From the NCBI GenBank assembly GCA_976226885.1, contig OZ320316.1, forward strand, positions 62,930,001 through 62,994,000: a DNA stretch of 64,000 bases, written 5' to 3'. This DNA is from Iphione sp. A-MEVVRFRX5. Taxonomy: Eukaryota. Each line of letters starts with the position of its first letter. Position 1 is the stretch's first letter. The position numbers were made by a program, and so were the translations under genes. Below, piece after piece: positions 4,002-63,032 of this stretch. The notes beneath the pieces were generated by a model. It saw only the letters and a list, made by a program, of their open reading frames with translations. It was not told the DNA's origin and did not search any database.

Positions 4002-4038
4002 TAACGTACTTGTTTGCTTTGTTCTATTTCAGGTGAGT
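4002..4038 (+). other. Candidate recursive splice site RS1 (3'SS immediately followed by 5'SS)
   Basis: taac-gta-cttgtttgctttgttctatttc-AG|GTGAGT; AG at 4031-4032. Confidence 0.65.
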
Positions 4039-4993
4039 CTTGTGATCTATCTGGTATCTTTGCTGTCTGCCGCCACGACCTTCTCCGCTCCTATCACCAG
4101 GTAAAGTAGGTCGTCTCAGACGGCACCGTCCGCCGTTCAGAGCAGTAAAAGCCGGGCTGGGCGTGGTTGTCAAGATCACAAGATCACAGTCGTCTCGGGC
4201 CTCTGGAAGCGGGCTGTCCACGCGTCACGGTGCTTCCAAAGCGAAGCCCTCTCGTCCGACTCACACCCCCAACAACCTCCATCACCCCGCCACCCATTGA
4301 TACAAACACCAAACTTACCCGTTCGTACCATCCACAAATTGTGGCTTCGTGACCGGGTAGTGCTGGGTGACTTTTCCCACGTTAGGTATTATTGATAGGC
4401 CTACCCACATACATAAAATGGGGATGTCCCGCAGGCGTAGAATTGCTATTGTAATACGCAAAGTGATGCATAGATTAACCGTTTTTTTTAACCTTATGGT
4501 GGATGGCCAATTGTACATGTCCCAAAGATCAAAGCAAGTTGCACCATTTAGCATAATTTAGTAATTCTGAAGTGTGACTTGATCCAGCAGCACCGATATA
4601 CGATGGGGTCGCTTATAAGCAGCTATTTTACCGTCTTTTTTACAGTCAAAAAAACTAACCTGTCCATGTAGAACACATAAAACACATGGGGTCCACGCGA
4701 TTGACCTCCAGGCTTATTTCGATCAGTTTTATTTGACAGTACATGCATACATTCGGAAGGAAAGAGAGAGAAAAGTTGAGAGAAATATACTGAGTCACCC
4801 TTCCTCGTCCTTCCTCTGACTGAAGTGATATGATAAACAGGTATGAATGCTAAGTTGCTTCGTTGTTCTATATTTAGTACTTTTTGTTATCGTTGCTATG
4901 GCAATCACTGGTGCCCCCTCATCCTCCCCCAGCCTTTCTCCTTGAAGCGTTGGATGGGGGCGGTTTATAAGAGCTGTTGATTATTGACGAATA

Positions 4994-5008
4994 TGGCGGC
5001 CTTTGATC
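4994..5008 (+). promoter_or_regulatory. Candidate composite TCF site (helper + HMG)
   Basis: TGGCGGC (rc GCCGCCA helper) abutting CTTTGATC (CCTTTGATC with the shared C). Confidence 0.35.
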
Positions 5009-7096
5009 TCACATCTTCTACCTGTCATACCATGCTGAACCTTGCCAAGCTAAGGTGAGATGTACCGCCTGTACCACGCTGGGTCGCTTAACCTGGCGAC
5101 GATGGAGCCAACCCGTTGCCATGGTGACCGTGACGCTGGCGAAGCCGTCATCTCTAGTTGGTGGGGAGGGGGAGGGGTGTGTTGGTACCTGGGTGCATGT
5201 GCAGAGGTCAACCTCTCGGCCCGGGATAGCAGCAGTACCATTGCACTCTCGTGCCCTCCATTGTATGTGCTTCCAGCACGAGTTGTACCACACTTCTGCA
5301 CGATATGCATGCGCCTGCCTGCCTTGCCTACCTGAAGGGTCCTATAGTTGACCACGACCCTCCAAGTTTCGCTCAGTCCTCAAAGTTCCTCTGAAGAGGA
5401 CGTATTTTAACGGAGTGCTGGTCAAAGCAGGCCTGAAGATAAGTGGAACTACTTCATAGGGGGTACCAAAACGCTGGCGATTTTTTCCCTGCTTTGTGTG
5501 TTTTTGCCACCATTGATTCCGCACTTTTCCGGTGGGCTGGTGAAATAATTAGCCCCCTAAGGCATTGATCGCGCCTCTAACGGTGATAGCAAACGTCGCT
5601 TATTACCCCCTTCAGAAATGGACAAAGGGAATCGTGCGGTTTTCTTGTCGAGATGGAAATGTCTGATATTTCCTGTCTCACCCGTTCGAACCTCGTCCCA
5701 TGCCATGCGTGCGTTCACATATTTCTGATATGGACAAAAACTGCACCGCCGACCCTCTCGCCCATCTTGTCGGCCGCGTCCTTTGGCCTCAGCGCTTGGC
5801 CGTACCGCCCCAATCTTGAGGACCGCCGCCCTAACTACCAACTATGTCAATCATCTGCTACCTTTTCTATGTGTCCACCTTCCTTTCGTGGTTTTAGTGT
5901 CTTTTGTTGATGCATATTCGAGTACCGCTAGAGGAAGAACATTTTCGCCTCGTACCTAAACTGGCGTCTATCGTTTATATAGCTTCGTGTGACTTACATA
6001 AACGGACGCTTTTACTGCAGACTACAAGATCTATACGCGCTCCCTTTGTCGTTTGTTTTCTCTGAAATTGCTCGTCACGGTGACAATTGGAAGGAAACAA
6101 TTACCAGGGCAGGGCTCATTGCAAGCAGGCCTGCACGTGGACCATAACTTCTGACCCAAATATCTGCCGACCATTCGGCCATGGCAGGTATGCTACGTCT
6201 AGAAAATGCTTCCATTGATACATTTTTGGCGCAGGACTCACAAAAAGGAAGTGTGCGCATTGTGACGACATCTGATGGTCCTACCTGACTACGCTACCTG
6301 AATGGCGGCCGATGTTATCGGCTTGAGATTCATCAGCGGTGCCATTCTATCCTTTTCTGGAAGAGGTAGGGTATTTAGTGGCGTTAGATCACGCAGGTGC
6401 AGCTCTGAAGAGAGGGAGAGACTCGTTCGAACGAAACGTTGGCGTGTATGCGTCATTGGCACGAGTGCAGTATGTAGTACTTATGTGCTGGTCACCTGGT
6501 ACCTGTTCGGCCCGAGTACAAACCCAGTAACCATCGTCGCTGTTATTTCTTTCTTGGCAAGAGCCGTAGCCTACGTGAGGTCATGACCCCGGGACCAGAC
6601 CGGACGTGGACGCAAAGGGAGGGGGCTGATGATGACAGGCCAGCGTAACCAGAACAGCCGGGTCTTTCAGCAAGCATAGGTTAGGCATCAATATTGAACA
6701 AGCACAGACGACTCGTGGGCTGAGCACGTCGAAACCGAATGAATAAGAGCCAAAATGAGAATCTCTTTGAAGTGGAGCGGATTGAACAAAGAGGCTTCTT
6801 GGTGGAATTCGGAATACGTGACCGCACTGTGCTATGAATCGTTGTCACGTGACTCAATGCCACGGCATTACTGCCGTCGCATATCGGGTATGGATTCGAC
6901 CAGAATTGGGAAAGAATGGACAGTGTGGGTGATGCACATGCAACGAACATAACACCACTTGTTCAAAATAGAAATGATGGGCGTTGTTTTGATGTCAGCG
7001 AGTGGAAGATATTATATACACATACACGTGTAAATGCACATGTATTCCAACTCCCTTTACAACAGACAGCTTCATTTCTATAGATTTTTTTTTTAC

Positions 7097-7255
7097 NNNN
7101 NNNNNNNNNNNNNNNNNNNNNNNNNNNNNNNNNNNNNNNNNNNNNNNNNNNNNNNNNNNNNNNNNNNNNNNNNNNNNNNNNNNNNNNNNNNNNNNNNNNN
7201 NNNNNNNNNNNNNNNNNNNNNNNNNNNNNNNNNNNNNNNNNNNNNNNNNNNNNNN
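7097..7255. other. Assembly gap (N)
   Basis: 159 N. Confidence 1.
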
Positions 7256-10200: not shown

Positions 10201-13200
10201 TGTTTCCTCTGTATATGACAGTCTCGAATACGGAGCCATCAACAGCAATAGGAGCCTGAAAATGTGTGTCAGGCATTAGATGTAGATGTGTAAATGGCGG
10301 GAGAGCTAGACGGAAAAATAGAACCAGAGAGAGCACCGCCACCCATTTATAAAGCTTTATAGTCAACCTTTTCTAAAGATCATATTTCTCGCTTATAGGT
10401 CGGGTCTCTTTGGGTTGTCAGTCATTCCGTAGAATGGCGGCTTTCATAGGTAACAGCGCTTTTAGCGAACGCATTAAAGGTTTATCCAATCTGTGCCCAG
10501 TGACTTTCAAAGCGCCGTGGGTATTGAGAAGGGACCAGCTCAGTGCCTTTCATGCGTGCATTTGTTGGGGTAACTTGACTCCATGTCTTTCAGAGGTTCG
10601 CAGTGTCTTTTGACGCAGACGACTTTTTAATCGCGGCGTAGTCTCATAGAATGGCGAAGAGTGGAGGTTTTCCGTGTCCAGTTTGAGTGAATTACATGGA
10701 CATGCAGCGAGACCGGAGCCTTGCTCATGTACCTCACCGCTCAGTCGACAATCAGTGGCCGTGCATGTGGCACAGTGGGAGCTCTCGTCCCATTATAGAA
10801 CTCCACATTCAGTCGGCAGAAAATAAGTTATTTTTTACTATGATACTTTTTCTGCTTCAGACAATTTTAACGTCTTCCAGCAGAAATACTGTACCGACAG
10901 AAATGGAATGCGTCGTGCGTCACAGAGCAGAAGAGAAAGTTTGAAGCTCCTTACGATTGACAGCCAATTAAATTTCTTGCGTACAGTTTTATTCTGTTTA
11001 TTCTGTTTATTTTACAGCACCACATATATGCAATAGCAAACTGGACAGTACGTGATGGCTCCCCTCCACTAGGTACTGGGGAACAGCAGGAATGCACAGG
11101 ACATAAAGGTTCTTGCTTTTACTGCTCTACAAAGTATTGTGTTACTCCCTGCATTTGATAAGACGGTTGAAAAGGGAAAGAGGATCCCATTCATCACGAT
11201 ATTGAAGCGAATGAAGGAGGAAGTCCTGTCCTTGAACCCGATTTTACATCACCATCTTTTCAATAGCTTGAGTGTAATAACGTTGTCTGAATTGTAATGG
11301 CCACGTTACATAAAGGGAAATACACTTAGCTTTGATAGCGTTAGTGTCGTTGGATTACAGTGTTCACGTTTCTACATTTTGCGATAGTAAGTCGAGACTT
11401 GAATATATAAACAGTAAAACTATTAGCTGGCCTCATTCAGTTCGGGTCGCGTTAGTGATTGTAGCATGTGTTTTTTTTGTAGTAAAGAGTCCGTCCGTTG
11501 GACCCCCTGCTGTTTACTGTTGCTCATCACTTCCAGACACTGCGCTTATTGCCTCCATACTGCACGCTGGGGCAGCCGGAACAGTAGGCGGGGATTCTGC
11601 CATGGGAATCAAGAGGGCACACCGTACATTGACCTATGCCACTCAGCTAGTAGACCAACAGGAATAGTAACAAGTGATTTCAGGCAGTCATGGATTCTTG
11701 AAGAGTGACTCTGATTTCACCTAATATAACCAAAATTGTCGGGGGTGGGGCGGAGGCTAGTTATCTGGACTTATGTAGAGGAAAAGGAAAGCAGTGTTAA
11801 CATCTTAATATTACCCTCCACTTTATGCATTATGCTTACCAAAACAGTCAGATGTTCAGTGAATTTTCCCCCTGGCGTTCGTGTTGACACCTTCACTTGT
11901 ATCGATTAAAGTGACATCGTTCTGTATCAGAAGGTCGCGTTTTGGTAATTCTGGATTTTGTAACCCCTTTTACCGTGAACGTAGTTAGGACCTACGGACA
12001 CTCACTACCCAAGACATGTGTGCGTAAAACGCCGATGACTCGAAAAAGGAACCTGCTACAGGGTCCAGGTATAGCGAGGTCCCCTCAATAGCGTCTGATT
12101 AGCTCCCATCAACAGCTCGATATCGAAGAACTTCTTTTTTCATTTATCATTTTTTATATTATTTTGTACGGAGCATGCTAACATTGAAAGGGGAAAAGGA
12201 CCCACCATTGGGTGCATAAGTATTTGCCCATGTACCTTGCGGGCCGCTTAATATATGTCTGGCGGGCCTAGAAGTTATATGTAACGTCAGTCAGTATTAT
12301 GTGGTGTTAAGTATTAAGCGAGTTGTGCAATGTTTACTTGGAGGAATTATCGGTAGAGCATCGGATGGTCCCAAAGCAATTATCATGATTATCGATGTAA
12401 TCTTCGCGACAGTTAGCACATAAACATGTACCGATCTCCATCGCTTTGGTCGTCTGATTTCCTCGCTCAACCGTACCACGCAATAAACAGACTCCGCCTT
12501 TGCACCGATTGAGACCCACGAGCATCAAGCGTACATTCCACACAAACAGGTCTTTCTTCCTTGATTTTCCATATTTCACCGTACCATGACCCTCTGATAG
12601 TATATATTTATTATGTATATATATGTACTAAATATAGAGAAAGGTTGGTATTCGATGTCAAGCCTCGCTGGACGACCCGAGCTGTAATTGTTCTATTAAA
12701 TTGTTAAATGGTCGCTTTAAATAAGAGTTTATTGCTGCCCCGATAAGCGAGCCCTCTAGCGGTGGCGGTGTGCGGGTGGGTCCATCAACTGTCATGGCCC
12801 TGACACTAACGGGTGGTCACTAATTTGAAAGTCAGCCCAATCAGAGCATGTCCTGTAGCATGGGTGCCCCGTCGGTCACATAGAGTTAATGACAGCTAAG
12901 CTCATTGTGCACTTCTGGGTAAAATCGATGGGCAACATGCAGACGGGCTTTCACCATGGCTGACATCGTGCGATATCTTCAACATGTCTGGCACACCTCG
13001 GCATCTCTGACACCGGACACCCAGTGTTTCTAGTGGCTTTAGAGGTTCTGTTTGTTTTTACTCCCAAAAGTATTTTACACAGCGTCCATGTTTTTTTTTA
13101 TGTAGGCGGAAATTTGTGCCTGGGAAGGTAGACAGACACGATTAGGACCAATATATGCAAAGAAATTTGTATTCATTGCGACTCATCTGAAGTTATGAAA

Positions 13201-16200
13201 ATATATGCAAGTCGATGGGATGCTGCTTTCTTTGAAGCGAGTGGGTGGATATGTGATGTGAAAGTACGATATGAGTTTCTTCAAACTCAGTCGTCATGAA
13301 AGTGATCCATGAGGGGGAAAAAACTCGACCAGCATACGAGAGAACATACCAGAGCGGCTTTGGCGGGAAGCAGTGTAAAACACTGGAAGTTCAACAACAT
13401 GCGCCACAAGCTTAGCGTATTTTGTTATTCACGTACGTTCCCATGCGAAACAGGCGTCCCACAGCGCATAAAAGTAGCTAGAGGAGGGAAATTCTAGGAG
13501 AGTCTGTCTTCCTTTCACTCTGGAAAATTCCAGTTGTTTGCTGGTATGTATGTAAAATGTACATGCTACGGTCCTTGGGTCATTTTTGCCCACCAACAAC
13601 AGCAAAATTGTCAACTGTTCGTTTTTGATGGTGTATACAGGTACATATATACGAAGTCGGGGATTTTAATTGTACATACAGCTGTTTAGATTTTGATTGA
13701 TCTTTAAGATATGATGGTTTTATTGGATGTTTGGATAGATGGAGGTTGGTGGGGAGGGGGGCAGGTTTGACCAGCGGTGGTCGTGTGATCATTGATGGGT
13801 TTTGAAGGTACCGTACACTGCGGCGACATTTTCAGCATTGGCCAACATGTCCGACAGGTGCCCACAGCACCGCACTCATGCCGGCTCATTGAACCAAACA
13901 AGGTTGTTGATGAAGACCAGACCTGGCCACTACACCTCCCTCCAGGGCCGCATTCAGGACTGCATATAGCAGCAGAGATGGGAAGCTATAACCCTGAAGC
14001 CGCCGGACGTCAGTTGACTGAAGGCCGCGTGAAGGGGCTTCCCGGAGACTGCGCAACAGCTTGCTGGCTGTGCTCTATTTTAGTTTTTATTTGAATGAAT
14101 TTTGTTTGCTTCTTGGTTTGTTTGCTTGTTTTTTATCTACCGAGATGCTTTATAGATATAGGGGGCGACTGTGGAGGTGAGTAGAGAGGGGGAAGGGAGG
14201 CAGAATTAGCACTGGTTGTTCGATATATCATGCAGCCATCCTCCCGCTTTGTCCTGAAGAGGATCTAGTGATGTCTGTGAACGCATGTCAAGACTGCCTG
14301 CGACCAACTAATTGCCCGGCATGATTACCATTAATTAGTGGGATTAGACTGCCGCTTAGTGAATGACTTCCCTTCAGGCGCATTGAGCGCAAACAGAGGC
14401 ACATTAAATAATTCTTTATTTTCTTGTTTAAGTAGGTGGTTTATGTCTGTGCACTCAGTACCAACAGGTATGTTGGCCATCATACACCAAGTGTGATTTT
14501 TGTTGATTTCCATTATGAATACGGGGGACACTGCTCAATTTTCTTCTCGACTCGGAATAAACACACATCACCCATTGGGGGAGAAGTACTAGAGGTATTA
14601 CTTGTAAGAATTTAGTCTTTGATGATCGCGCGCCTTCATGCATGCTGACAAACAGATTGTCGTTAGTCTGTGTCTTCTCTAGTGGTGGCTTTACAAGGTA
14701 GAGCAAGGGTAGAGACACTCCCCTGGTAGGTATACTGGCGCCAGGCTGTCTCTTGGTGATGTCTAGACGAGCCCGCCCTGTGTGCCAACCTACAAGGGAC
14801 GGCTTTAACTTCGAACCCAATGACGCACAGTGAGCATATTACACGTACCGTACATATACATACTAGAGTCATTTGGTTTGATGGCGACGGTTGCAGTTTC
14901 GCATATGTTCGCACTTTCCCTAACCCAGGTGAACTGTTTGCATCTCCTCCACCAACCCACCCACTCACCCACCCAGCTACAGCCGTCACCACCGCCTTCC
15001 CTGTGGGGTAACTGAGTAAACACAGTGGGCCTCTGGGAACGTGTGCAAATTTCTCGAATTTGTGTATGGGAACTGTTCAGGAATGGAGCCTTTTAGTCAA
15101 GGGTCTTCTCACACCACTGGTACCCACTAGTCTCTGATAAATCGGTATCTAATAAAACACTATTGTTGTGTGGTCTCTGCCGGATACCCCCACGGCGACC
15201 GTCATTGAGACACCAGAGGCACTGCACAGTGGTGTCGTCCGTGGTGGAAGGCATTAATGGAGTCAGAGCACCAACGGGCTGGCCGTGAGGGCCGGTGCCT
15301 CCAGTATCTCTCTGGTTGAGGCCCAGTTCAAAAAGGGCCGAACAATGGCGGCACACTGGACACAAATCTTGTTAACTGCGTGACAATGGGTTTAGCATGG
15401 TCCTCGTAGCTATAAAGTCCGGAGGTTGGACGGAGCAAAGCAAAAAAGCACACCTTAGATTTTGGCCTTACCCTGGGGGGTTTGACTGCAAAGGAAGGTT
15501 TCTTTTAATTTGTCTCCTTAGTTAATTTCCTCCCCAAAGGCATTCATTAAGGAGACGTACCTTCGACCCTCCTTTAACGTGAGCGGTCCATAGGAGAAGC
15601 CTAAGCTCAGTAGCTCCACATAATGACAAGAACACAGTGCATGTGACGCCGTCCGAAGTAAGTAATCTCCGTGTAGGTTTCACCGATGAATCACGAGGTC
15701 CAATATCTGCCCGGTGTGTTTGGTCAGGCGTACGGGTAAACACACAGTGAGAGTTCTGCTCATACTCTATAGCTGCAAGGATTGCATTAGGTCACGAATA
15801 GCTCAGAGCAGCCAGGTCTGAATTAATCAACTCATATCAACTAATGTACCATGGTTGACAGTGCTCTAGACAGTAGTTGATGTGGCCTCTTACCGAGCTG
15901 CTATACGTAGTAAGGGTTTATTGGTAGTAGAAATCAGTTCGCCTTTGCTTTCCCAACCTCCCTGTAGATATCCTGGAAATAATTGCTTATTTCCAAGGTG
16001 ACTACTGGTGTCACTTGTTTGGTAATCATAATATACTCTATAGTGGTACAGATCATTACTAATGTGGCATTCCCTCGTGACGGCAAGGGGCACGCCGGCG
16101 CGATGTGGTGGTGGTCTCTTGAACCCCCCCCCCCCCTCCTCCGCCGACAAAGAGGAGGTCCCCTCCCCTACCTAGCAGACGTTTATGCCAGTCGGTTCTG

Positions 16201-17491
16201 TCAGGCTAGTCTAGGCATGCCCGACCGAGCTGTAAGTGCCCCCTCCCCTCCCTAGGCGCCCAGGTATGCGCACCGAGAACAGGTATGTATATAAGACAGG
16301 AAACTTTGTAGACCAAATATATATGGCTTCCGTCGATTCGAGTGTGAATAGCGTGTCCCGACTAAACAATATGAATTGTGTCGAGTGAAAATGTGCTGAT
16401 TCGATAATTTATGAAACAGATGACACCAATTCAACTGTGCTCTAGTCAACGGAGTGTATACCAAGACGGACTGTATAGAATGTGAGATTTTCATGATTGA
16501 CAGCTGTTTTTCTTTTTTTTTTTTTAATTCGAACTGTTTGACATAATCAGGCGAATACAGCTGCCAGGTAAAAAGGTTTCCTCGATGAATTTTCAAAGGG
16601 ATTCGCTTTGGGTTTTCTAGAATTACTTCCACCCGCTCGGGGCTTAGCTTCATTGTTCGTCGCTCGTTAACTATACAGTCGTTTGTCCTAAACTGAGCAC
16701 TGTCACTCAGGGTCGCAGCAGGCCACGCCCTGTTACACGCCCCGTGAGAGTGATCCGCGGCAACTTCAAAGGACTCCAAGGTGGTTTACCTTCCAAGGTT
16801 TGCCACCCGCATTGGGCCAACTGACACCCCTGAACGTTGTTCCTTGTGCGCCGTGGCCCCGACGTGTGATTTGATGATACGTCTAGGTGTACGGCGGTTA
16901 TTTCCCCGGCTGACTGTAGTATAGCTGAATTTATCCTTGTGGTCCATTGCTGGAGGGGATGGGAGCGTTAGCCATTTCGTTTTTAGACCGAGGCGATCAA
17001 AAATGCTCTTGACAAGAATGAGAAAAAGCCTCTACGAATTAAGTTAGAAGTTGTAGCTGGAGGCTACAATAACGCCTCCTAGTGACAAACTTGTCAGCAG
17101 AGAAGCGAGCAGCGTAGCTCGGCCGCCACCTATTTCTAAATTCATAAGTCTGGCCGGTGGAAATGACAGGGTGCTGAAGAACACCATGTCCAGATGTCAG
17201 GGCTGTCCATTGGGTCCTTGTCGCACTCAGCACGGTGCCTGATGGCAGTTTGTCCATCATACTTGTGTAGAGGGACAGTCCCACGCTCTAAAACCACTGC
17301 CCTGTAGGACGATCTTACCGACCATCGATGGCTTAAATCTGCAAGGAACCATGTCTGTGTGAATCTGCTTTCTCTTTTCGATAAAATGCATTCGGAAAGA
17401 GGGTTAACCTTCACTTGTGTTTTGTTTTTAATCGCTCATTATTACTGTTCACTGTTTAAATTAAAATGATTTAGGCAACACGTTAAAGCTA

Positions 17492-17515
17492 TTTTTCTTC
17501 TCCTTTCAGGTAAGT
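17492..17515 (+). other. Candidate recursive splice site RS2
   Basis: 16/16 pyrimidines tttttcttctcctttc-AG|GTAAGT; AG at 17508-17509. Confidence 0.72.
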
Positions 17516-20447
17516 TAACGCTGCCAGATCGTATAGAGTGGTCCAAATCAAGCGAAGGTAATTGCTATTTTTAGTACAGACGGAGAGGGAAAATTCAACT
17601 CGGCCTGAAAAAAAACAACATATTTTAGTGCAGTGTCAAATGCACAACATACCATGGGAAGGACGACGGTGCTTTGCCCTCACCATTATTTCAGGGAGAG
17701 AATGTTAAGGCCTGTCAGCGAGTGTTATTTCAGCAAATCATCTGTATGTTCTCCTTATGCTCGTGGCGTTTATGGCAGGTCACTGTGAAGTTTGAGTGCC
17801 ACTTATGTTTTGAAATAAGTAGGATTGTATGTGGCTGTGCTTCCCTGGTTAACAGTTCTAGACAAACTATTTGTGCAGTTATGGTCCTTACCTTTGGGAG
17901 GAATGAGCTGAAATATTCCCGACAAGGGCGGTCGCAGGAATGTTAATCTTCAAATCATTATTATATTTTCACCTGGGCCAGTCGTAGTGCTCGAGATTGA
18001 CCAAAGAACTGCATGCTTACCGATGGCAATATTTTTCATGGGCCAGTTTTTTCTTCGTTCCGACTCATAATTTGAGCACATCACTTAAACTGGTTAGACT
18101 TTCTAAAAGTAGATAAGTTGCCATGTGAATGATATATATTAAGTACAGGAATATTAGCTTTCTCGTGAAGATTAAAATTGTTAAAAACAGGGGCAGTTCT
18201 TTCCCAAAGGGTGCATTGGTCGGACCACACCTCCTTTTATGGCAATAACTTGCTGTGCAAGAATGCGAGTAAATGCTAAAAGAGTTTTGATCGTATCTCT
18301 ATAATTACAAGTCGTTATTATTATATTTTTGTAGTGCATGGGTGCCACAGAGATAAATCTTGATTATCTTTGTCTTTTTTGGTTGAACAATTACGGTTCA
18401 TTTTTGAAATGATTTCTTCCTCTTTACAGTACATGATCTGCGAACATTTTCACAAGCACATGGAGATTATGTTTCAGTAGAAATAACTCTAGCCATAAAT
18501 GATCGAAATGTTTAATATTAATGGCCCCAAAATACAACAATTCTGTTGCTAGCATCTTTCTCTTAGTGAATGCTTGTCTCTCAGATAGCCATATTCTCTC
18601 AGCTATCACTTATCTTTTTGCACACATGTACTTTTGATGGTTCTACTTGCAACTAATTTTTAGAAATTCATTCTGGTAATCATCCAAAAATGAACGGGAA
18701 TAGCGTCTATGGCCGGCAATTCAGTTTGCCTCACACGAGACGTCGAAAAAATATAAAATATAGAACACCTTTACTCCCCTTGTACAATACATGTACTATA
18801 GTGATGTTTTGAATTAAGGGTAAGGGAAGGCAGCGCTATTAGAATTGATCGCATTCAAGAGTTGAAAGATGATGCGTGAAAAGACGTGTACAAATATCTT
18901 GTAACACACACCATCTCGGTGTACGTTTGCACACAGATCGCTGTAGCAAAAGAGAAGGAACGACGTGCGTGTGACCTACTGAACCCAAGCGACGTGGTAA
19001 AGGTGGATGAGTTACCCTCGTGTACCTTCAGGTAAAGATCGATACTTTCCTGCAGGTACCGAAGTGGCGAACAAAGTGTTACTGCTGGTAGAGAGACACG
19101 GGTGACGCCATCCTTTCATTCTTGTCTATCGGTTGGCTTAGCTAACACACCTTGCCCCGCAGGGTTACGGGCTGTGAACACGCCTGACGTGCCCCCTGAA
19201 CAGACATTTTGCTCTTTTGTTCTGTGTTCTTTGGCCACAGCGTTTCGTTACGTTGGCATTGTAGAGCTGCCGCTACAGGCATGACCTGGCAGAGCAACAG
19301 AGAGCAGAATACGAGGCACCTTAAAGGCCAGCTCACTTCAACCCACTGGCCGAGGCTAGTGATGTTTAAAACGCACTCATTTATATTGGCATGACAGGAG
19401 ATGTAGGGATTATTTATGCCTCATAAATTTATATACTGCTTAGTAGGGTGGTCTATGACCTTATGCCCGCGGTACAAGTCCTATTTTAAATTGACGTGAG
19501 TCCTACGTGATTCTACTTACCTCAACTCCAAAACCCATTTCAGGTACAATAGTGTGATCACAGAACGCCACAGGGCAAGAGCTGAAACGTCACTACATGT
19601 ATATCTTTCTGGGACCATATGAAATTTTGTCCGTCTCCGTGCTCCGCTGCTCACAGTAATAGCATATCATATTTGCATTTCCAAATATGAACACTGTTCA
19701 TACTTTGAACATTAGGTGGATTTTGGAATGCCTTGTCGCTGCGTTCTTTCCACCACAATAGAATATGGACTGTGTTTCTCTATGATATGAGAGATGTAGC
19801 ATTCTGTATTTCCCTGTTGATTTTATGGAGAATGAGCTTCTGATACTTTCACATTCTTGCACACTGACATAGACATGTCTGTCATACCCCACCCTTAACA
19901 ACCTGCTTATCCTTCTCCAGCTACCTCACTTACCATAACTTACATTACAACTGTCAGTGAGGAGCAAGGGGCGTACCCTGTGCCAGGCCATGGTCTGAGG
20001 CCTTCTCATTAAGCCTGGCGAAATATTTCGTGTTTGTGAGCACCAGTGATACATACAAAACCCTCCCTGTCTAATGCCCCAGTGGCAAAAAGAGAAACAG
20101 ATGGAATCGGCGTGTCGGATGTCATACAGAATACTCTCAGCGCCTCGTACATCTCAGGGCTTTCGAGGACGTTTGGCTAATTCAGTGCATCCTGGCAAAG
20201 AAGGTCTCTTACTGGAAATCCGAAGATATACGGCAGGAACGTGTTTGCAGCTCCTGTTTTTTTTTCACTTTGGGTACGTGTATATCACGATGCTGGGCCT
20301 GTGGGTGTGAATTTCAGCAGCTCACACAACGACTGTCTTGATACTGTTGAAGCCGCCGTGGGAAAAGCCATAACGTTCTAGTGAGGGATCAAGATAGAGA
20401 TTCTCTAAATATCCAGACTGGTAGTCGTATACCCTCATGTGTCTATC

Positions 20448-20657
20448 NNNNNNNNNNNNNNNNNNNNNNNNNNNNNNNNNNNNNNNNNNNNNNNNNNNNN
20501 NNNNNNNNNNNNNNNNNNNNNNNNNNNNNNNNNNNNNNNNNNNNNNNNNNNNNNNNNNNNNNNNNNNNNNNNNNNNNNNNNNNNNNNNNNNNNNNNNNNN
20601 NNNNNNNNNNNNNNNNNNNNNNNNNNNNNNNNNNNNNNNNNNNNNNNNNNNNNNNNN
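20448..20657. other. Assembly gap (N)
   Basis: 210 N. Confidence 1.
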
Positions 20658-23600
20658 CACACCAGCAGCTAGGACGGCACGGCTGGCTGAGTTTTCTGGG
20701 TTTATCGTAAGTGTAGTCCTCTCTAGGTCCACGGGTCCGACCTGTACCTGTGCACACATATCTGGCGGCCACATCCTGACGAAACGGCTAATCCCAATGA
20801 CAAACACAGCCAGGCATAGAGTGTTGGGCAGACGGAACGAACAACTTGGCAAGAAAACCGGGACACATTCTGCAAGCATCTGGATCGCACAAAAGCTTCG
20901 GTTCCGTGCCTGCTGAGTAATTAAGACCTAAATAAACGTACATTTTTGGATGTATGTAATTAGATCATTGCTACTCGATCTCTACACTATTTGTCACCCG
21001 GTAATATATGTATTCACGGCATGGCGCGAATCGTCCACTATGAATAGTAATGATCATATTGTGCATACCCCCAATCTGTGTTGGACAGCAGTCCCAGTAT
21101 GCGGGTGACACATTTCATGACTAACTGTGAAACTACTGCACGTAGCACTCCTCACTGCATGTCTTGTCACCGCCTCTTTACTGTCATGCTGAAAACTGGT
21201 GTGCGTACGAAAATGAATGCTTCAATCATGAGTGTGGTATATAGGCCCCGCCATATGCCGAACATTTGTCTTGTACGACTTTGGGTAGGCAGGCGGGAAG
21301 GTCACTATGCTTGTAGAAAATGTTTAATAGATAGGTAACCCTGCATTACCAAAGTCATCATGTCATTGGTGGTAAAGTTAGATAGGTCATCGCTATTTTT
21401 TCACGGGGGTGGGTGGGTAAGTAGCCAGATCAGTAGGTTACAATGTATGCTGTGCCTGCATGTACATTAACATTAGTAGGAATGGTGATACCCAGTACCC
21501 TGGTTGGCAGGTTATTGCGTATGTTGGTGTGGGATGGTGGGGGTGGGTTACTTAGTACATTCGAGGATTTATCATCAGCGTACCCATATAGGCCGTCGTA
21601 GTCATAGTAAACTATATTAAGTTAACGAGCAAAGGAAATGAGCTCAATCTTTGTACCAAGTTGCTATTAAGTGCTATAGAAGGAACATTTATTTTTCTTT
21701 ATGCCAGTCATTCTTGTGGGCATATATATTTCTGAACGTCTACTTTCAGCCTTCTTAAATTAGTGTCTCGGGTCGCCAATTGATTGGCGAAAGATTCCGA
21801 CTGTAGTCTAGTACCAATAGATTGTCGAAGAAGAACACGAACGGCAGCTACAGGTCTTGGACCTTTTTGCGTGCGTATGCTATTTATTCTTAGCGACGGG
21901 GAATACCTAACATTCTGCTAATCCATCTCGCCAAACCTGCCTGTTTGTGCTAATCAAGAATGACATGCACCACCAACAAGGCCCTAGCAATGAAGCATAT
22001 TTTTATGAGTTGGTTAATTATTCCATATTGTCACATAACACATTCCAGCCGGGCTTGAAGTAACAGATACAGGCGAGAGACATCGTCGTTGATCATCCCT
22101 GATTAATGGCTTCAGAGGAGGACCCTTCGACTTCAAAACATCTTCCATGAAGTTACAAGAAAATCTTCACACATACATATTCCGTAGAGTCGTTTCCAGA
22201 CCTAAATCCAAATCTTGATGAGCGATGTTACAGCTAGTTGCCTCATATTAATGCAAGAGCCCCTCCCCCTCGTCCTCCTTTTTTTTGACGGGAGGATCCC
22301 AATGTACACATGAATGTAGATGAAATAGTGCTTGTATATCTTGTAAGGGTTAATATCACTGGGCCAGTGTTGGGTGGCACGCGTTGCGGGGTGTCCTCCG
22401 GGATCAAGTGTGCCTCGTTTTTCAGGTGAGAACAGTCACCTATGACGAGTCCTCTACCTCATCCATCAAGTTGTCCTCTCTTGTGGGCCCGTTTAATGTA
22501 TGGCTCCAGTCTAATCTATATTGGCGCAGCGTCACAAATACTTACCTTTATCTGTCTCTTCTGTGAAACGGAGGGCATCAGAGGCATGTTGTCAGCTTAA
22601 GGCACGACCAAGCCGTCGGGCGCCCCTGATAACTTATGGCTTCACATAGTGGAGATGGGGACCAACGAGTGGTCTCTTGTCTCCTTCAACCTCTCCCCCA
22701 TCACCATTTACCGCCCATTGGCGCATAATCTCTGAAGGGACTCTTCTTTTGAGGAAGCCGTTTCTTTTGGAAATCATCCGTCTAATTATTCACAGCTCAG
22801 GAATCAAATGAAAATGATAAGATTCTACTTTGTAAAGTAGCCCCTCCCCCCGTTTTAGTGGGCTACAAGAAAGGAGAAGACCCGCCGTTTCGTTCGCTGA
22901 TCACATCGGGATGTGACCCACATGAAAACTTGCATTTTGCAGCGGGTTTTCGGAGTTACGACCCTGTCTGGCAATTCGGCGCGAACATACCGAAGTAAAG
23001 AGTAAATGATCGTATGTGTACAGTTACCAGCATTAACAAATTGTCGCTACTTGATGAAGATAATCCGCAATCGATTGTTTTTATGTCACTATCGGGTCGA
23101 ACAAAACTACTATGTGACACTGAACATTCGATTGCAGTACATCAACGATTGCAGGAGGGTGCGCCTCTGACATAAAGGAGCCATATCGGAAAGTGATGCG
23201 TTTCATATGAATTTGCAAGTCAAAGCTCCTATGACATTATTCAAGTAACCGTGGCTATAAAAGGGTGGCCTCACCTTAAAGGGCCTGTGTACAAGGGCTT
23301 TCGTTCGGTCCCGCGGTGTATGAATGTCAACAGGCAGAGGTTATTTGTTTAACCAGAACCATTGTTGTCACAGGTTTTGTGGTAATTCTAGTCAACTGAA
23401 CTCCAAAGAAAACAAATCATTCAACCGTGAAAAGTAAGAAGAAAATTCCATTATAAGAGAAGGTTTATTTTATTTCTTTTCTTCATTGAAAGAACAAGCA
23501 AAGAGGTCAGAGAAGTTTAGAGTGGCTTTGAGAACAGCTAGTAGTCTACGAAATGCGGAATTGGACGTTTCTTCAACCGTTTTACCAGGCACATGCGCTA

Positions 23601-25168: not shown

Positions 25169-28100
25169 TTAAGGGTAACTACAAAAGCATGTTCACATAT
25201 GTAACAAGGTTGTCATTAGTGTTAGAGGAAATATGTCGTTGTGGATATTTCATTCGGTTTGGTGCCTATTCCTAGTGCAGACGTTTCCACATTCCCCCTT
25301 CAAGTGTCATTCCCCATTCAACGACAGATGGAAATTAGATACATCGCCATATAGAATTTCAGTTTTTTTGCCCTGTCATAATGACAGGCAAGCAGCATCG
25401 GATCACAAGCCTTCATGGAACAATCAACTTCCGACACAAATGACATACTGAGGCAGTGTAATACCGGTATTGTTGTCTAAGATGTCAGCAGAAGGTCGAG
25501 GTCTCGGCAGGAGAACAAGGTAGATACCTGAGGCAGGTAGAAATAATGTCAGAGAGGGGTCGCCCCGAATACCGTGGTTCGGTGTATGGTGACAGCATGT
25601 GCATTATTATTTATAATACCGGCTCTTCTGTTCTCTGTCATAGAATGAGGTCCGCTCCATGCAGTACTAAAGCACAGTCGTCGCGCATGCAGCCTTGTCC
25701 TTTTACAAGACCACGGTTTTTTTTTAAGTAGAAGGTCATTTCACAAGCAAATTTTAACTAATTGTGTCAGGGGCTCGGATATGAAAAGGCAACATTCTCT
25801 GTTGAGCCATGTAATCCGTCTATAGGAAAGTGACTCTGAAAATAGGCGGAAAGCCCCCGCAACAGATCTCCAATGTTGCAGCAGAGGATGATGTGCTGGT
25901 CAGATTATATCGAAAGAGAGGGACGATGATATGGATTGATGTTCCGTTTCCCATTCATGTAAACACCTAGATCAAAACAGAGGCCTTGCGACTTTCACCA
26001 CGGTCGTTCCAATCTCATGATCCTTTTAACATGCAAACACCCATTGATTTGTTTATGTGCATGTAGATAAAAAAATGGTTGAAGGTATTGTGCCTGTCGT
26101 AACCTTCCGTGGGACTCCAAACGCAGATAACCGTTTACTAAGTAATATCAGGTAAGGCACTATCATAGAAAGTTTCTTTCATTGTCATTTCAAAGGCAGG
26201 GAGGCCTGTGTTCATCAAATGTCATCTTCCCATCCATGGTTGATAGTGGAGAAAAGTGTGTTGCCCACCATCTGTTAGTGTCGGCATTTTGCTTGACCAT
26301 TATCTATTCTCATCTGTCACACAGGTCGTAAATGGTCGTGAAAGAACCATTGAGATGTATCTGTATATTAGGTTAAATGTATCTGGCATTCTTCTCCTTG
26401 GAAAAAAAATTTCACGACACTTCATTTTAACCAGTTTATTTTTGACAATATAAATTCCTGTACTAGGCAAAAGTTGTCAAGCAACTGTGTAGACATACAC
26501 ATTTTATTTTACTGACATGTTCCTATCCTTTGCTTAGAGATTTAGTTGTTCTTTGAAGTAAAGTGCCCTGCCCTGGTTTCTATTATTTATTAATAAATTG
26601 CGTCAACATGTATTCCATATACATGTACGTGTATATTTACTATAGATCTTGAAGGGAAGGATGGTTACATTTCTACAAGGCATAATTGCTGGTACTTTTT
26701 AATAATTTTCGACACACTTTTGTGTGTTTGATCAGAATCAAGCATCCTACTGATTATATACATGGAGACCTGGTTTGGATTTGTCTCAGAATGCAAATCA
26801 AAGAAACAATTATCAAGAGGAAATGACGAGGTCGTAAATCATTCTACCCTCATGCAATGCCGTCTGCCATTTTATTTTGCTCCAGTTCTCTCGGTTCTTG
26901 CAGTGCAGGGAAAAACTCCACAAACGGAACGAGCTTTCTATTTTGCTTTTGATTTCTTTGATCTTTTTTTCTAGTTTATAGTGCATGTTCCTCATCCCTG
27001 GTCGAACAGAACTCTTTTATCGCTGCATAAGCGAGCTGCTCTCCAGGGCAGTCCCCCTGGGCAGATATTTGACCCCTCAGAAGGGTTCTGGGCATGTGCA
27101 GGGGCACCGACGCGTTGAACACTGCCAGGACTCGCCGTTACTTTCAGCTCCGGTTTCCCGGCCTGGTTAATTGGAATCAGGCCCCGGCTACCAACACATA
27201 CACATATGTATTCTCTCGACGGTTCCAGAGGCAGGGCTGCAGGGGAGTAGAGAAGAAATGCGGTCAGGGAAAAATAGGTACAATGTAGATCTTTACCAAT
27301 AAATGGCAATCTCCAAATAATCATAATGGGATGATGTCGTTTTGCAATTAACATCGCTGTATCTAGTGTCCTCGTCAGTAAAACACTATACACAGACCAT
27401 GTTTTTAATTCCCCCCCCCCTACTCCCCCGTACGCCCACAGAGATGCTATTGTTGTGCCCCATGTCTGTCTGCGTGGTTAGAATTCATTCAAGTTGGCAT
27501 TCTCGTGCGAGGGCGCACATTTATCGCAGCTGTGTTTTCTGCTTCTTTTTAAGAGCCTTGACAATTTGTACTGCGAGTGGTCCCCATAGATCCTCCTGAG
27601 AAAAACTCCACGTGAGCTATGGCTGTAGGAGGACGGCGACTCTAATGGGCTCTCTTGCACCTTGGGCAGTAGACTTAATGCCAGGGTGCGTGCCTTATTA
27701 TGGTCCACCCGGCACAAGAAGTGACTTCGTCAGACGATGCCTCTTGCCAAACGATTAACTTGGCAATTGTTTCTGATTGCCGAACCCTACGGCAAAGGCA
27801 AGGGGTCCTGATGAGCAGATGATTAAGACTTTTTCTACACCCGTGTGACTTCTTTTTTGTTTGAGATTCAGTTTTCCAGCAACTGCATGCATCTTCTACC
27901 ATCGGAGTTGATCACAAGGTTGTTACTGTTATAGTAGGACTAAGCTTATAGGAGCAGTGGAAAGGGGATCGTTGTATTACACCCTGTTTGTCCTCATCTT
28001 GGATGAAGAAATAAAAAAATATCCTACAGTAATAGGTATACTACTCTGAGTTCGCCTCCACACCTCCCTCAATGGGTTTATTTTGATGCCATTTACAGTG

Positions 28101-32200: not shown

Positions 32201-32201
<1 letters not shown>

Positions 32202-32236
<35 letters not shown>
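32202..32236. repeat. (TA)n microsatellite
   Basis: Directly visible. Confidence 0.97.
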
Positions 32237-32242
<6 letters not shown>

Positions 32243-36123: not shown

Positions 36124-36160
36124 TCTAAATTCATTTTCTCTCTTTCTCTTCCAGGTAAGC
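36124..36160 (+). other. Candidate recursive splice site RS3
   Basis: tctaaat branch-like motif, then 19/19 pyrimidines ttttctctctttctcttcc-AG|GTAAGC; AG at 36153-36154. Confidence 0.7.
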
Positions 36161-39100
36161 GGGGCCCCTAATCTAGGTAAACTATCGCCTACGCGTACTC
36201 GAGTCACATGTGATCAAGGTAAAACAAGGTTCCTTTCTACTGCCCGTACCCAAAACATAAAATAAACAGCGACAGTAAACAATATGGTGTGTGGTTGGAA
36301 GACCCAGGGAGCATGGCTCGTCCTAGTTCCTTTAATTTTGCTGGATCCCTGTGTAGGTGAGTGTCATTGTGTATTTCGCCTACAAATGCGCTCAGGCGGT
36401 CCTGGGAGAGCATCGAGCTGCCAGCCGACATCCCGACGTTGATAGATCAGGCCGACGATGGGCCCTGCAGTCTGGCGCCCTTCACCCACCGCCCACCCAA
36501 CCACCCACCCAACCTTCCATCCTTACCCCCAACCCACCTCCACGCAGTCTCTCATTCTCTGGTTCACAACAATTACCCCAGTCAGCGATGTAGCTAACTC
36601 CACTCTTACCTGCCTCTACCTGCAGTAGTATCAGCTGTAAGAAAACACCCCATGTTGCCATGCATCTTTAAATAAACAGCCTGGATGCCAAAACATTTCT
36701 AAAGGTGATTTTTGAAGCATATCTGGTTGCTTTACGCAGAAATGCACTGCCCTGAATCTGTACATACAGCTTGTAAGGTGGATTGGCGAGACTAGCCCCG
36801 TGACTAATAAAGATGAATGGGAGGCGTTTAAAGATGTGTAATACCCGTAATTAACATGAGAGTTGGTTTCAAATCTAGCACAGTGAGGAGCGTAGTTGCC
36901 CCTGACCGACTTTCCCTTGAATACACACGTGTGCTTTTCTGGTGAGTTGAGAGCCCACAAGAGGCAAACTTTGAGCGAAGCGCAGAGTTTTCAATCAAAA
37001 ACCTGTTGTCTATGCTTGTTCTTCTCAAGTATGACGGTTGGGTCTTTGGGGAAAGCGACACTTCGGCACGTGAGATTTACCTGGAAAGCTTAGGTGTTCA
37101 GAATCTCACTCTGTACACGGACTGTGTTTTTCCCCTTTACTCGATAACTCCACGGAAGGCTGTGAGTTCTTTGGCATTGCATCATGGACAGTGGATTGAA
37201 TCTCGAAATGTCCAAGGGCCCAGTCATGTAGGCATAAAATCTACAATAATCCAATGCAACAAAACAAGCGTCATTTTTCCGCCCCCGCTTTTGCTCCCCT
37301 TGTTAAAAACAATTACCCTTCGTATTACGATAATAATTATAATCGTTTGAAAATTAGAAGCCCTGGTACAGAATTATGGAATGGACCGCTTGACTCTATC
37401 CTACCAGGATACTCAACAAACGAGTGACCCACCTGTTGTAACACAAACACGCGTTTCACTGGAGCATAAATATGATTCAATTGATGTGCCGTAATACAGG
37501 TGGCAATTGTCCGACATCAGAGGAAAGAATGCGGGCACAATACGTAATAAAATAGGCAATGTCACAAGAATGGAGATCCATGGCATTTATACGTCAGCAT
37601 CCCATGACATTTCCGTGGTGATATGCTCTTAGGTAAATATAGGCTGACAGACAGTAGGAAAGAGGCAGGTAGGCTGATGATAAATAGCATCTAAGAGACG
37701 GGGAAAGGGGAGAGGAAAAACACAGTCTACTTCTGCCCCTGCTTGCATGTATCAGGTAGATAAACGGACAAAGGCAATCAGTGCTTGACCAAGACGACCA
37801 GTGCATCAACACGTACTGAGTAGTCCTCGCCAACACCTCGAGGTGACTTGTACAGACCCAGGCCCCGCCATACGCCGGACGATTTATGTGCGTGATCCAC
37901 CATTGTTGAAGGGTCCATCGCCAACAGCTACTGAATGTCGCTCTATAGTCAAGCTGCAGACACGCTTTGCTGAAAGTCTGCGCGCACAGGCGAGTGTCGG
38001 CAGAACCCCTGCTATTTAATGGTTCTTTAATGGAAAGGGTCTGCGGAGGCTAATGATTGACAATAAAAGTCGTTCTTTTTATTTCGAGAAAGAGTTCGTT
38101 ACCATGTAAATGTACATTGGAGTGCAGGTTTGATACCCAATTATCTCCGTCTGCTGTGGGCAGTTTAAACGCCGCATAAAAGTTTAAATGTCATTTATGT
38201 GCCTCAATTGTATTAACATGTATCTATGTGTTCTCGTCCCAGTATGGATAAGGCATATCAGCCTCAAGGTATGTTTCTTAAAAGGGGGACAGTCGATAAG
38301 CGTCCCGGATTTAATATTTAAAAGATGGGAGCTCTAGATAGCACTGTGTTAATTATTGGATGTATCTGCTTAAGATGGGATGATACCCTCCTTTTCTGGC
38401 AGCAGCCTTATACTCCCCCAAGTGTGTCTTCACTCTCTTAACACCAATAAGCCAGTGGGCCTGCCTAATTCGACTAAACAGTCCCAGCAAGCAGCTTTGA
38501 CAAACAAGCCGAAGAGTTTTAGTGGCTTTTAGACAGAATTCGTACATTTAAAACAGAGTCTTTGGCTATGTGGAATATGTGTACTGTAAAACTACACATT
38601 TGAAAGGATCTTGTAGAAAGGGGATGTTTCAAAGCTACCTTGCTGAGGTCTCAATCTCCTTAATTAATTTCCACCAAGAGAAAAAAAAACGAAAAAAACA
38701 ACGCTTTATGAGCTGGAGCGGGTGAAGGTTCTAAAGGGAATAGCTTCATTTCCTCAGCGGTTTTGGTGTAACTAATGTGTAGAGTGGATGGCTATTAGCC
38801 TACTCCCCTTAGACAAGGCCTGGTCCTGTGCACCTTCCTGAGGGAGTGTGTGCCCTCAGGAAGGAGACGTGGCGGACCGTGGCGTCCGGTCCCTCGTGAC
38901 GTCACGCCTCACATCAGGCACAACGTCGTCGGCAAGAGGCATTCAAGGAGGTCCTGGGAGAGAGGGGTCGTGGGAAACGCTGGCGGCGCTCGATCAGTGG
39001 CTGGGCCTTGTTTTAGAGGTAGCAGTGTAGTCTGGAATGATACCAAAATGGAGGCGACTGACAGCCGTGTAATGATGGAGAGAAGGCACTCGACTGGAAT

Positions 39101-39628
39101 TTGAAATACTGAACGTAGTTACTACCGGGTTCAGAACATAAATGAATGCTATTCTTTTATACTCATAATACTTGATATACATGTACAGTCAATTCTCAGT
39201 TAAAAACCGGATGGCAGATGAGACCAGACGAGAGAAACCAAGTTTGGATAGAATCAAAAGTATCATTTGTTTATAAAATGGTAATCATACGGGAGACCAG
39301 ATTGCAACAAAGACGAGATTTCTCCATTCCCACAGTGTGTCTCCTTTAGAGTCCCCTTAAACACCATTTCATTCAAAGTGCTTCTTCGAAACTGCTTTTA
39401 CAAGCCGCTATATGCACATCTGTGTACACATAGTTCGTGCATTGTTGATCAAGATATACAGTACAATCTGTTTGGCTAACCCCACCCTCATTGAAGGATC
39501 GATCATCTAGATGGGGTCATCGGTCTTGCAGACAGATCCCAACTGCATATGCAGTTCAGCTACGTACGTGTTTACCATTACCGATCTCCCTACAGGTGAC
39601 AAGTCCCACCAACGACTGCGGTGACAGC

Positions 39629-39708
39629 GCTGCCCTCTACTGACAAGTCTGGGTCCACCGGGCGCGCCACCTGGTGGACGCCGTCCCGGGTTACACACCA
39701 GAGGGCGC
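39629..39708. promoter_or_regulatory. Cluster of three CTCF-like motifs (minus, minus, plus)
   Basis: rc TCAGTAGAGGGCAGC (39629-43), rc CCACCAGGTGGCGC (39664-77) and ACACCAGAGGGCGC (39695-708), compared with consensus CCASYAGRKGGCRS. Confidence 0.5.
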
Positions 39709-39884
39709 CCCTCTTGAACCATACCCCTCGGCCAGCCCACGCTCGGCCCACGGTCGAAAAAAAATCCAATACTTGCCTTGATAGGCCGATCGTTTAATGA
39801 CTTTTGTGGTTCGACATGCGGCTAGTGTTACCCGACATCGTCCTGCTGTGATAGGGTCGGTGTTAGCTTGATGTTGACCTGAGG

Positions 39885-40320
39885 TGTTCTGTTCGGTGAG
39901 AGGAAGAATAGATGTCGCTGGTAGGCTATATAAAAGTCGTCCGAAGTGTTATTTGCTCTTATCGAAGGCACCACAGCATAGATCGACGCCGGTCGGACAC
40001 CATCNNNNNNNNNNNNNNNNNNNNNNNNNNNNNNNNNNNNNNNNNNNNNNNNNNNNNNNNNNNNNNNNNNNNNNNNNNNNNNNNNNNNNNNNNNNNNNNN
40101 NNNNNNNNNNNNNNNNNNNNNNNNNNNNNNNNNNNNNNNNNNNNNNNNNNNNNNNNNNNNNNNNNNNNNNNNNNNNNNNNNNNNNNNNNNNNNNNNNNNG
40201 CGCGTTTATAGTTATCTTGTTCTCTACTGAGCCTCTGTTGCTAGGCGGTGACAGGTACATGAAGAATAAATGTGTTTAGTTATTTACCCAAGCATTCATT
40301 GAAATGACTTGGTCAGAACA
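39885..40320 (+). mobile_element. Possible solo LTR spanning an assembly gap
   Basis: TGTTCTG...CAGAACA inverted ends, TATATAAAA at 39927-35, AATAAA at 40265-70. No TSD found and the middle is N. Confidence 0.28.
40005..40199. other. Assembly gap (N)
   Basis: 195 N. Confidence 1.
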
Positions 40321-41578
40321 TTTATTATTGTCACGCGCGTACTCTACATTACACTGTAGGCATGTCCCAGTCGACTGCTCTGCTCGCGCCCCGAAATGAT
40401 AAAGTATGGCCACCTCGAAGAGCACTAACATTGACATTTTCGCCCTGTCAGCCCAAAGTACATTTACTTGGGGTATTACCCCTTCTGCTATAACCCTCGA
40501 CAAGCATTGCAATGCGGGATTCAATCCCTGCTTTAGATCCAGGCCGTCGGGTGGACAGCGTGCCTCGCTGCGCTGATTTATTCAACCGGTAGAGATCGAG
40601 TTTACAAAAGGGACTAGCCCTTCGCCGAAATAATGGGCCCTGAACGAGATCCGGCGGTAGAGCTGTCAGGCATGCCGGAGCTCGCCTATAGAGCACGTCG
40701 TCGCGGCCGCCGAGTTTGTTCTTAATAACGCCCGGACAACTTGTATATGAGGCCGGCCCTCTTGCCTCGACATATCTGATCGACTCACATTCCATTCATT
40801 TTCAATCACATTGCCGCGCGCTGAATGAGGCTCATGTGAAGAGAGACTGACAGCTTGTGGGAAAGGTCGGCGTGACGCCTCTCAGATTTAATTTGATCTA
40901 GATGCCTGCCGCTTCTTTATGTTTGTTGAACCTGTGGACAGTGCCCGTATCTTCGGCAGCCTCGCACATGAACTCTATTCACAGGAAATCCACTTACCAC
41001 AACTGAAAAATATCCCATGCATGAAGGTGTCCATACTTCTTTACCTTTTAAAATGCCATCCTTCGAAAAGGCAGTGTTTCACATACCAGACCAGCATGTC
41101 GTTCCTCCCTTATGCCAGGATGAAGTTGTTGTTAATTCATATGCATTAGTGTAGTTGACACATGAAACATCTTCCAACACCAAGTTAATCATAGCGATTT
41201 CTTGCACGCATGTATGCAAATGAAATGACAAGGTCAAATGTGATGTCGTGTTGGAATGAGAATTGATGCAGACAGGAGTGTTTTTAAGCCACTTACGGAA
41301 AGGAGCCAGAATCGATCTACATGCAATGATATAGTTTGACATGATGTATCTCCTGTACTCTGAATAGTAGCAGTAGCGTTGACTAAATGTTGAACTTTTT
41401 TATGTCCCCTTGTCACTTTGTATTTGTACATAATAACCCTACCTCATTGATTTGACGCTGCTTTACATTGAGACTTGTCACTCATGCTGTCGGCACCTGT
41501 CCTCTTTTCCTTACCCCCTCTGCCCTCACCTGCACGAGGTTCCCGTACCTGATGTGTGTTCTCTCTCCTCCCTTACAG

Positions 41579-62910: not shown

Positions 62911-62914
<4 letters not shown>

Positions 62915-62992
<78 letters not shown>
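62915..62992. repeat. (CT)n microsatellite, about 39 units
   Basis: Directly visible. Confidence 0.97.
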
Positions 62993-62996
<4 letters not shown>

Positions 62997-63032
62997 CTCT
63001 CTCAATATGGTTCAATAATTATAGATCTCCCG

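Follow-up and report, generated by a model that had tools for sequence, protein, structure and literature searches.

Candidate recursive splice sites with cryptic exons in a giant Dachsous intron of a probable spiralian

The 64,000-nucleotide stretch of contig OZ320316.1 analysed here (Iphione sp. A-MEVVRFRX5, assembly GCA_976226885.1, positions 62,930,001 to 62,994,000, forward strand; hereafter the window) holds the remainder of a Dachsous-type gene and, upstream of it, part of a giant intron in which we identify three candidate recursive splice sites, or ratchet points, each heading a putative cryptic recursive splicing exon (RS-exon). Dachsous is a planar-polarity and growth-control cadherin. 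A preliminary description of this DNA had proposed that a chain of such sites partitions the Dachsous intron and that inclusion of the cryptic exons would give a poison switch on the level of Dachsous.

Results

A Dachsous gene with an intron of more than 41.6 kb

Cadherin-repeat exons lie on the + strand of the window from 41579 to 59854, i.e. the sense strand of the gene is that of the intron motifs described below. In the lists and the text, a slash marks a splice junction.

41579-59854, + strand: Dachsous-type gene, remainder, encoding ~23 cadherin repeats, a membrane-spanning segment and a PF01049-matching tail
41558-41765, + strand: true acceptor (junction 41578/41579) and the Dachsous exon behind it (41579-41765; 187 nt, starting in phase 0)

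The last exon (57185-59854) encodes four cadherin repeats followed by a transmembrane segment (residues 440-460) and a 428-residue cytoplasmic tail in which the PF01049 match scores over its cut-off. A search with the tail only returned proteins named protocadherin-16/23, protocadherin-16-like and Protocadherin-16, and the top named matches were from the annelid Paralvinella (56%) and the bivalve Tegillarca (55%). EGF or laminin-G modules, as in Fat, were not matched in the window gene, and its repeats run straight to the membrane. In total, these data indicate that the host gene is a Dachsous ortholog and that the lineage, judged from the best named tail matches, is a probable spiralian one. 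Dachsous/protocadherin-16 (DCHS) has ~27 cadherin repeats in total; because ~23 of these can be counted within the window, three or four further repeats probably lie upstream of it.

Exon 41579-41765 corresponds to positions 18-78 of the cadherin profile by profile match, and its orthologous exons lie at L003:7102-7290 in the relative with 72% protein identity (see below) and at L004:7108-7296. This exon follows a strong acceptor and starts in the middle of a cadherin domain, which requires a coding exon further upstream; a tblastn search of 1-41572 with the gene's own repeats found no hidden cadherin exons. Combining these observations, we accept 1-41578 as part of an internal phase-0 intron of >41.6 kb that extends past the window start. 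The region had been taken for a Dachsous intron in the preliminary description, and the protocadherin-16/23 tail matches, together with the mid-domain start of the exon and the lack of cadherin exons upstream, bear this out.

Three joined acceptor and donor motifs on the sense strand

The intron contains the following candidate sites and cryptic exons, numbered in the direction of transcription:

4010-4038, + strand: RS1 candidate ratchet point, pyrimidine tract and CAG/GTGAGT; junction 4032/4033, tgtttgctttgttctatttcag/GTGAGT; score 12.9; positional ortholog L010:8690
4033-4106, + strand: RS1 cryptic RS-exon of 68 nt (4033-4100), with a weaker donor, CAG/GTAAAG, at +68
17489-17515, + strand: RS2 candidate ratchet point, pyrimidine tract and CAG/GTAAGT; junction 17509/17510, gctatttttcttctcctttcag/GTAAGT; score 16.0; positional ortholog L006:2663
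17510-17563, + strand: RS2 cryptic RS-exon of 48 nt (17510-17557), donor AAG/GTAATT at +48; the equivalent in the relative is also 48 nt
36130-36160, + strand: RS3 candidate ratchet point, pyrimidine tract and CAG/GTAAGC; junction 36154/36155, attttctctctttctcttccag/GTAAGC; score 15.6; positional ortholog L006:17829
36155-36224, + strand: RS3 cryptic RS-exon with two candidate donors, TAG/GTAAAC at +22 and AAG/GTAAAA at +64; in the relative, CAG/GTAAAC at +51

The three motifs, a pyrimidine tract followed by CAG/GTRAG, are thus present on the + strand at exactly the positions given for them previously (4032, 17509 and 36154), as are the second donors at +68, +48 and +64; the TAG/GTAAAC at +22 of RS3 had been missing from that account. 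At the three window sites, 16-19 of the 20 positions upstream of the AG are pyrimidines.

Sites were scored with a position matrix covering the pyrimidine tract from -20 to -5, a pyrimidine at -3 and the donor positions +3 to +6. Scores of 16.0, 15.6 and 12.9 were obtained for RS2, RS3 and RS1, respectively, compared to 6.9 for the next sense AG/GT and 7.1 for the real acceptor. The best antisense site in the intron reaches 5.0, in line with the earlier impression, gained by eye, that the minus strand holds no equal. In a simpler pattern search, TTYCAGGTRAG was matched four times in the window, each time on the + strand and within the intron, compared to a shuffle expectation of 0.11. Dinucleotide shuffles (of the whole sequence or in 1000-nt or 300-nt blocks) gave ~0.003 sites per intron with a score of at least 12.9 and ~0.03 with a score of at least 9.9. 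As controls we used 263 kb of real DNA (antisense strands, the remainder of the window and, from the relatives, the other sequence on both strands): one site in these controls scores at least 9.9, as opposed to seven in the 98 kb of sense giant intron from two species, and this sole control site, which falls among the relative's Dachsous exons, resembles an ordinary exon acceptor.

The sequences flanking each site occur only once, both in the window and in the relative, and the neighbouring open reading frames are without a Pfam match; an origin of the sites from a transposon or another repeat was rejected on these grounds. Rfam families gave no match in the window. The fourth TTYCAGGTRAG match was considered as a further ratchet point:

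22405-22431, + strand: weak fourth AG/GT (junction 22425/22426), tttttcag/GTGAGA; score 5.2

The tract of this site is short, the 110 nt downstream of it lack an AG/GTA donor and the relative has no strong equivalent; it is probably not a ratchet point.

Orthologous sites in a distant relative

The main comparison was made with a relative in which the protein encoded by the last exon is 72% identical and which is represented by a 706-kb ENA contig; from the gene we walked upstream in steps of ~10 kb and obtained 81 kb, oriented as the gene. The orthologous intron is >56.3 kb long and has no cadherin exon in it. Its nucleotide similarity to the window intron is confined to short collinear blocks, and the two introns are otherwise almost unalignable. 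Four sense sites in it are outliers:

L011:2330, sense: ctttccag/GTACGT; score 10.9; upstream of the equivalent of the window start
L010:8690, sense: gatttcag/GTGAGT; score 9.9
L006:2663, sense: ctttgcag/GTGAGC; score 11.9
L006:17829, sense: ttttccag/GTAAGC; score 14.8

Beyond these four, sense sites score at most 5.2, and antisense sites at most 8.5. L011:2330 also has a CAG/GTAGGC at +48 and a CTAAC ~25 nt upstream. The conserved blocks of the window against which positions can be compared are all non-coding:

222-2316, no strand: cluster of four blocks (222-264, 957-1003, 1887-2009 and 2232-2316), 70-84% identity to the relative, stops in all frames
10378-10513, no strand: anchor, 69% identity, E about 3e-4
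14307-14369, no strand: anchor, 81% identity, E about 1e-9
23882-23906, no strand: short collinear block
27081-27186, no strand: weak anchor, 68% identity, E about 0.05, collinear

L010:8690, L006:2663 and L006:17829 match RS1, RS2 and RS3 in order and in the intervals between anchors that they occupy, and their distances from the acceptor are 40.3, 22.5 and 7.4 kb, as compared to 37.5, 24.1 and 5.4 kb in the window. Conservation in congeneric genomes had been put forward as a check on the sites; all three are conserved in this one relative. Moreover, the members of the first and of the third pair have the same donor variant (GTGAGT and GTAAGC, respectively). Between orthologous sites only the motif aligns, and flanks and exon bodies do not; for RS3 and L006:17829 the local match is 28 nt at 82% and comprises the motif only. 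Because L011:2330 lies upstream of the equivalent of the window start, a further site may lie shortly before the window in the species studied here.

A second donor behind every site

The sites share a layout that extends beyond the joined acceptor and donor. All seven (three in the window and four in the relative) have TT at -5 and -6, and all seven are followed by an AG/GTA donor 22-68 nt downstream, a feature with a background of ~7.5% in stretches of equal size from these introns. Sites in the relative, four in number, were picked by score, so that there the downstream donor was a prediction and not a selection criterion. Each of the RS-exon donors (GTAAAG, GTAATT, GTAAAA/GTAAAC, GTAGGT, GTAGGG and GTAGGC) is weaker than its own ratchet donor.

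In the window, cryptic exons of 68 nt and of 64 or 22 nt would shift the frame of the phase-0 intron, and the 48-nt exon is in frame with TAA as its third codon. The cryptic exons of the relative measure 48, 42, 48 and 51 nt (for L011:2330, L010:8690, L006:2663 and L006:17829, respectively) and are all in frame and open in phase 0, which may be due to chance or may hint at occasional inclusion. The 68-nt RS1 exon was also considered as a signal-peptide exon, its frame-0 translation being hydrophobic, and was rejected: it is without an ATG, out of frame with the exon at 41579 and unconserved.

Partition of the intron

Together with the acceptor at 41578/41579, the sites partition the visible intron into three pieces of 13.5, 18.6 and 5.4 kb. 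The preliminary description had proposed this partition with the same figures; the three pieces stand, and the exact lengths are to be read as estimates because each segment holds an assembly gap. The runs of N (7097-7255, 20448-20657 and 40005-40199) fall one into each segment and keep a distance of 1.4 kb or more from the sites and the acceptor. On both sides of every gap there are conserved anchors that are collinear with the gap-free contig of the relative, and the order and orientation of the scaffold are therefore supported. In the relative, the segments are 13.7, 17.7, 15.2 and 7.4 kb. Removal of the window intron in at least four steps, as suggested previously, is a reasonable reading, and four may be an undercount because the relative has an extra candidate upstream of the equivalent of the window start.

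Discussion

The motif, strand and conservation data suggest that the intron carries ratchet-type sites at the level of the motif, as initially described: the sites are outliers found on the sense strand only, their positions and order are conserved in a relative, and they have the layout of RS-exons. Combining these data, we consider it probable that the three sites in the Dachsous intron are recursive splice sites, i.e. ratchet points with RS-exons, of the kind known from Drosophila and vertebrates. We infer that the spliceosome would use the sites, and in which order it would do so.

By analogy with known recursive splicing systems, we propose the following mechanism: (i) as the polymerase passes a site, the strong acceptor would be paired across the cryptic RS-exon (~20-70 nt) with the weak downstream donor, (ii) the upstream Dachsous exon would be joined to the AG of the ratchet site, (iii) the GTRAG after this junction would constitute a new and stronger donor that beats the donor of the RS-exon, so that the cryptic exon would leave with the next segment, and (iv) the intron would in this way be removed piecewise, in pieces of ~13.5, 18.6 and 5.4 kb and one or more upstream pieces outside the window.

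The closest parallels are found in Drosophila, where recursive splicing has been described for Ubx, kuz, Bx and luna (Duff et al., Nature 2015; bioRxiv 10.1101/006163; PMC8605326). There, ratchet points consist of a joined acceptor and donor with an unusually strong pyrimidine tract, they have TT at -5 and -6 in 99.5% of cases as compared to 44% of ordinary introns, their flanks are conserved, and their host introns are 11-133 kb long and cut into pieces whose median length is 16 kb, the range being 2.6-64 kb (Duff et al., bioRxiv 10.1101/006163). Each Drosophila ratchet point also heads a cryptic RS-exon of ~50 nt that has a downstream donor weaker than the ratchet donor and a body that is poorly conserved and usually out of frame (Joseph et al., PMC8605326). 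The Dachsous sites resemble these in (i) the Yn-CAG/GTRAGT consensus with its tract and the TT at -5 and -6, (ii) a cryptic exon of ~50 nt with a weaker donor, the motif being conserved and the exon body not, and (iii) several sites per intron, in introns of tens of kb with segments of ~5-19 kb; intron and segment sizes here and in the relative fall within the Drosophila range. Because the RS-exon donors are weaker than the ratchet donors, they also fit the competition model proposed for Drosophila (PMC8605326). The Dachsous sites differ from those in Drosophila in that they belong to another phylum, the best named protein relatives being annelid and bivalve, in that they are predicted from the sequence, and in that the cryptic exons of the relative are in frame whereas those of Drosophila are generally out of frame.

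In vertebrates, recursive splicing reportedly proceeds through RS-exons in long neuronal genes, as described by Sibley et al. in 2015. The likeness to the Dachsous sites lies in an RS-exon that is recognised by exon definition and regenerates a donor at its 5' end (as summarised in PMC8605326 and PMC13149111). Vertebrate sites are, however, few, have a weaker consensus and lie in introns of >100 kb, whereas the sites described here resemble the strong Drosophila type. For the locust NPF1 gene, a recursive site has been predicted in a 230-kb intron with a Drosophila matrix (PMC8892266). As with Dachsous, this is a ratchet motif predicted in a non-model invertebrate with expanded introns; the locust site is backed by U2AF65 immunoprecipitation, and the sites described here by conservation across species and by the RS-exon layout.

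Other readings of the same motifs have to be weighed against recursive splicing. That they are functionless chance motifs in a T-rich sense strand appears very improbable to us: the + strand of the intron is indeed somewhat T-rich, which raises the odds of a pyrimidine tract, but block shuffles that keep this composition still yield ~0.03 sites, the antisense and other real DNA is nearly devoid of such sites, and the pattern is repeated with the same layout in the relative. More serious, although in our view unlikely, is the possibility that the sites are acceptors of expressed short cassette exons, like m1 and m2 of Ubx, or of regulated poison exons included in some Dachsous mRNAs. A plausible donor lies downstream of every site, the lengths of the exons in the relative (48, 42, 48 and 51 nt) are divisible by three and the exons are free of stops in the phase of the intron, and expressed RS-exons are known in Drosophila (PMC8605326). 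A coding cassette would, however, be expected to keep its length and sequence, and the exon bodies are unalignable between the two species; moreover, the versions in the window species shift the frame or hold a TAA, and the conserved GTRAG directly after the AG is not needed by an ordinary cassette exon. Finally, the motifs could be conserved for another reason, as exon boundaries of an unannotated sense non-coding transcript or as U2AF/U1 decoys that fold or protect the intron without being spliced, and the presence of further conserved non-coding blocks in the intron would fit such a role. Yet conservation covers precisely the acceptor joined to the donor, together with a second donor at an exon-like distance, and we know of no other element with this defining anatomy of ratchet points. 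We regard this alternative, too, as improbable.

Several points weigh against recursive splicing at these sites. The support for their use in splicing is derived from sequence, which lends some weight to a function other than splicing. The regenerated donor is only partly scorable, the upstream donor exon being outside the window, and the matrix was built from general knowledge and was not trained on this genome. The conservation comes from one relative with 72% protein identity, and in a second relative (63% identity) no strong site was found in the 9.96 kb upstream of the orthologous acceptor, at which point the contig ends. Moreover, by simple arithmetic three random sites would fall one into each matching interval with a probability of ~0.09, which is only modestly unlikely. 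The weight of the argument lies in both species having just these outliers.

The proposal that inclusion of RS-exons acts as a poison switch on the level of Dachsous, which derives from vertebrates, where RS-exon inclusion usually leads to a premature stop, fared less well. The exons in the window would shift the frame or introduce a TAA, but all four exons of the relative are in frame and open, and Drosophila RS-exons are constitutively skipped and do not act as a switch (PMC8605326). A bolder reading would be that the in-frame RS-exons of the relative are sometimes included, which would add 14-17 residues to a cadherin repeat of Dachsous.

Recursive splicing is established in Drosophila and vertebrates, and a case has been predicted in locust (PMC8892266). 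In the literature we found no report of recursive splicing for molluscs or annelids and no paper that links it to Dachsous in substance, in agreement with the earlier remark that no such case was known for this gene in such a lineage. We lean towards the view that strong ratchet splicing of the Drosophila type is routine in a spiralian (annelid- or mollusc-like) lineage and that the Dachsous sites have been kept at orthologous positions across a deep divergence. If this is true, the mechanism would be ancestral to protostomes or bilaterians, and not a speciality of insects that is paralleled in vertebrates. Orthologous ratchet points with a complete RS-exon layout in two distant genomes from a third branch of the bilaterians would speak for an old mechanism of general use in long introns, and would give a simple and testable sequence rule for the annotation of such introns in non-model genomes. 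In the Dachsous gene, the candidate sites would also mark places where a mutation could bring a cryptic exon into the mRNA, with loss of Dachsous function as the result; this has been shown for kuz in flies (PMC8605326). Inclusion of the cryptic exon after weakening of a ratchet donor is known in flies for Bx as well as for kuz.

Other features of the locus

The conserved blocks in the Dachsous intron, with 68-84% identity, are candidate regulatory elements. The blocks between 222 and 2316 were also considered as the missing upstream exon and rejected, since their conservation is at the nucleotide level and they have stops in all frames on both strands.

In the intron of the second relative, a tandem array with a period of ~37 nt lies in antisense orientation at L009:4667-5500 (identical to L004:1815-2650). 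It is called as a 236-aa open reading frame, and its antisense strand carries repeated ccccag/GTGAGC motifs; the array represents a satellite insertion and not a gene.

Within the Dachsous gene, an intact-looking open reading frame of 941 aa at 44508-47333 (+ strand) belongs to a non-long terminal repeat (non-LTR) retrotransposon with endonuclease and reverse transcriptase. It is inserted in sense orientation in the intron that separates a Dachsous exon ending near 44228 from one that begins near 47717, and it is absent in the relatives, in which the corresponding intron is <1 kb. On the 3' side of the Dachsous gene, the window has an open reading frame of 202 aa (62798-63406, + strand) without a Pfam match, and downstream of the gene in the relative there are C2H2 zinc-finger open reading frames on the opposite strand.

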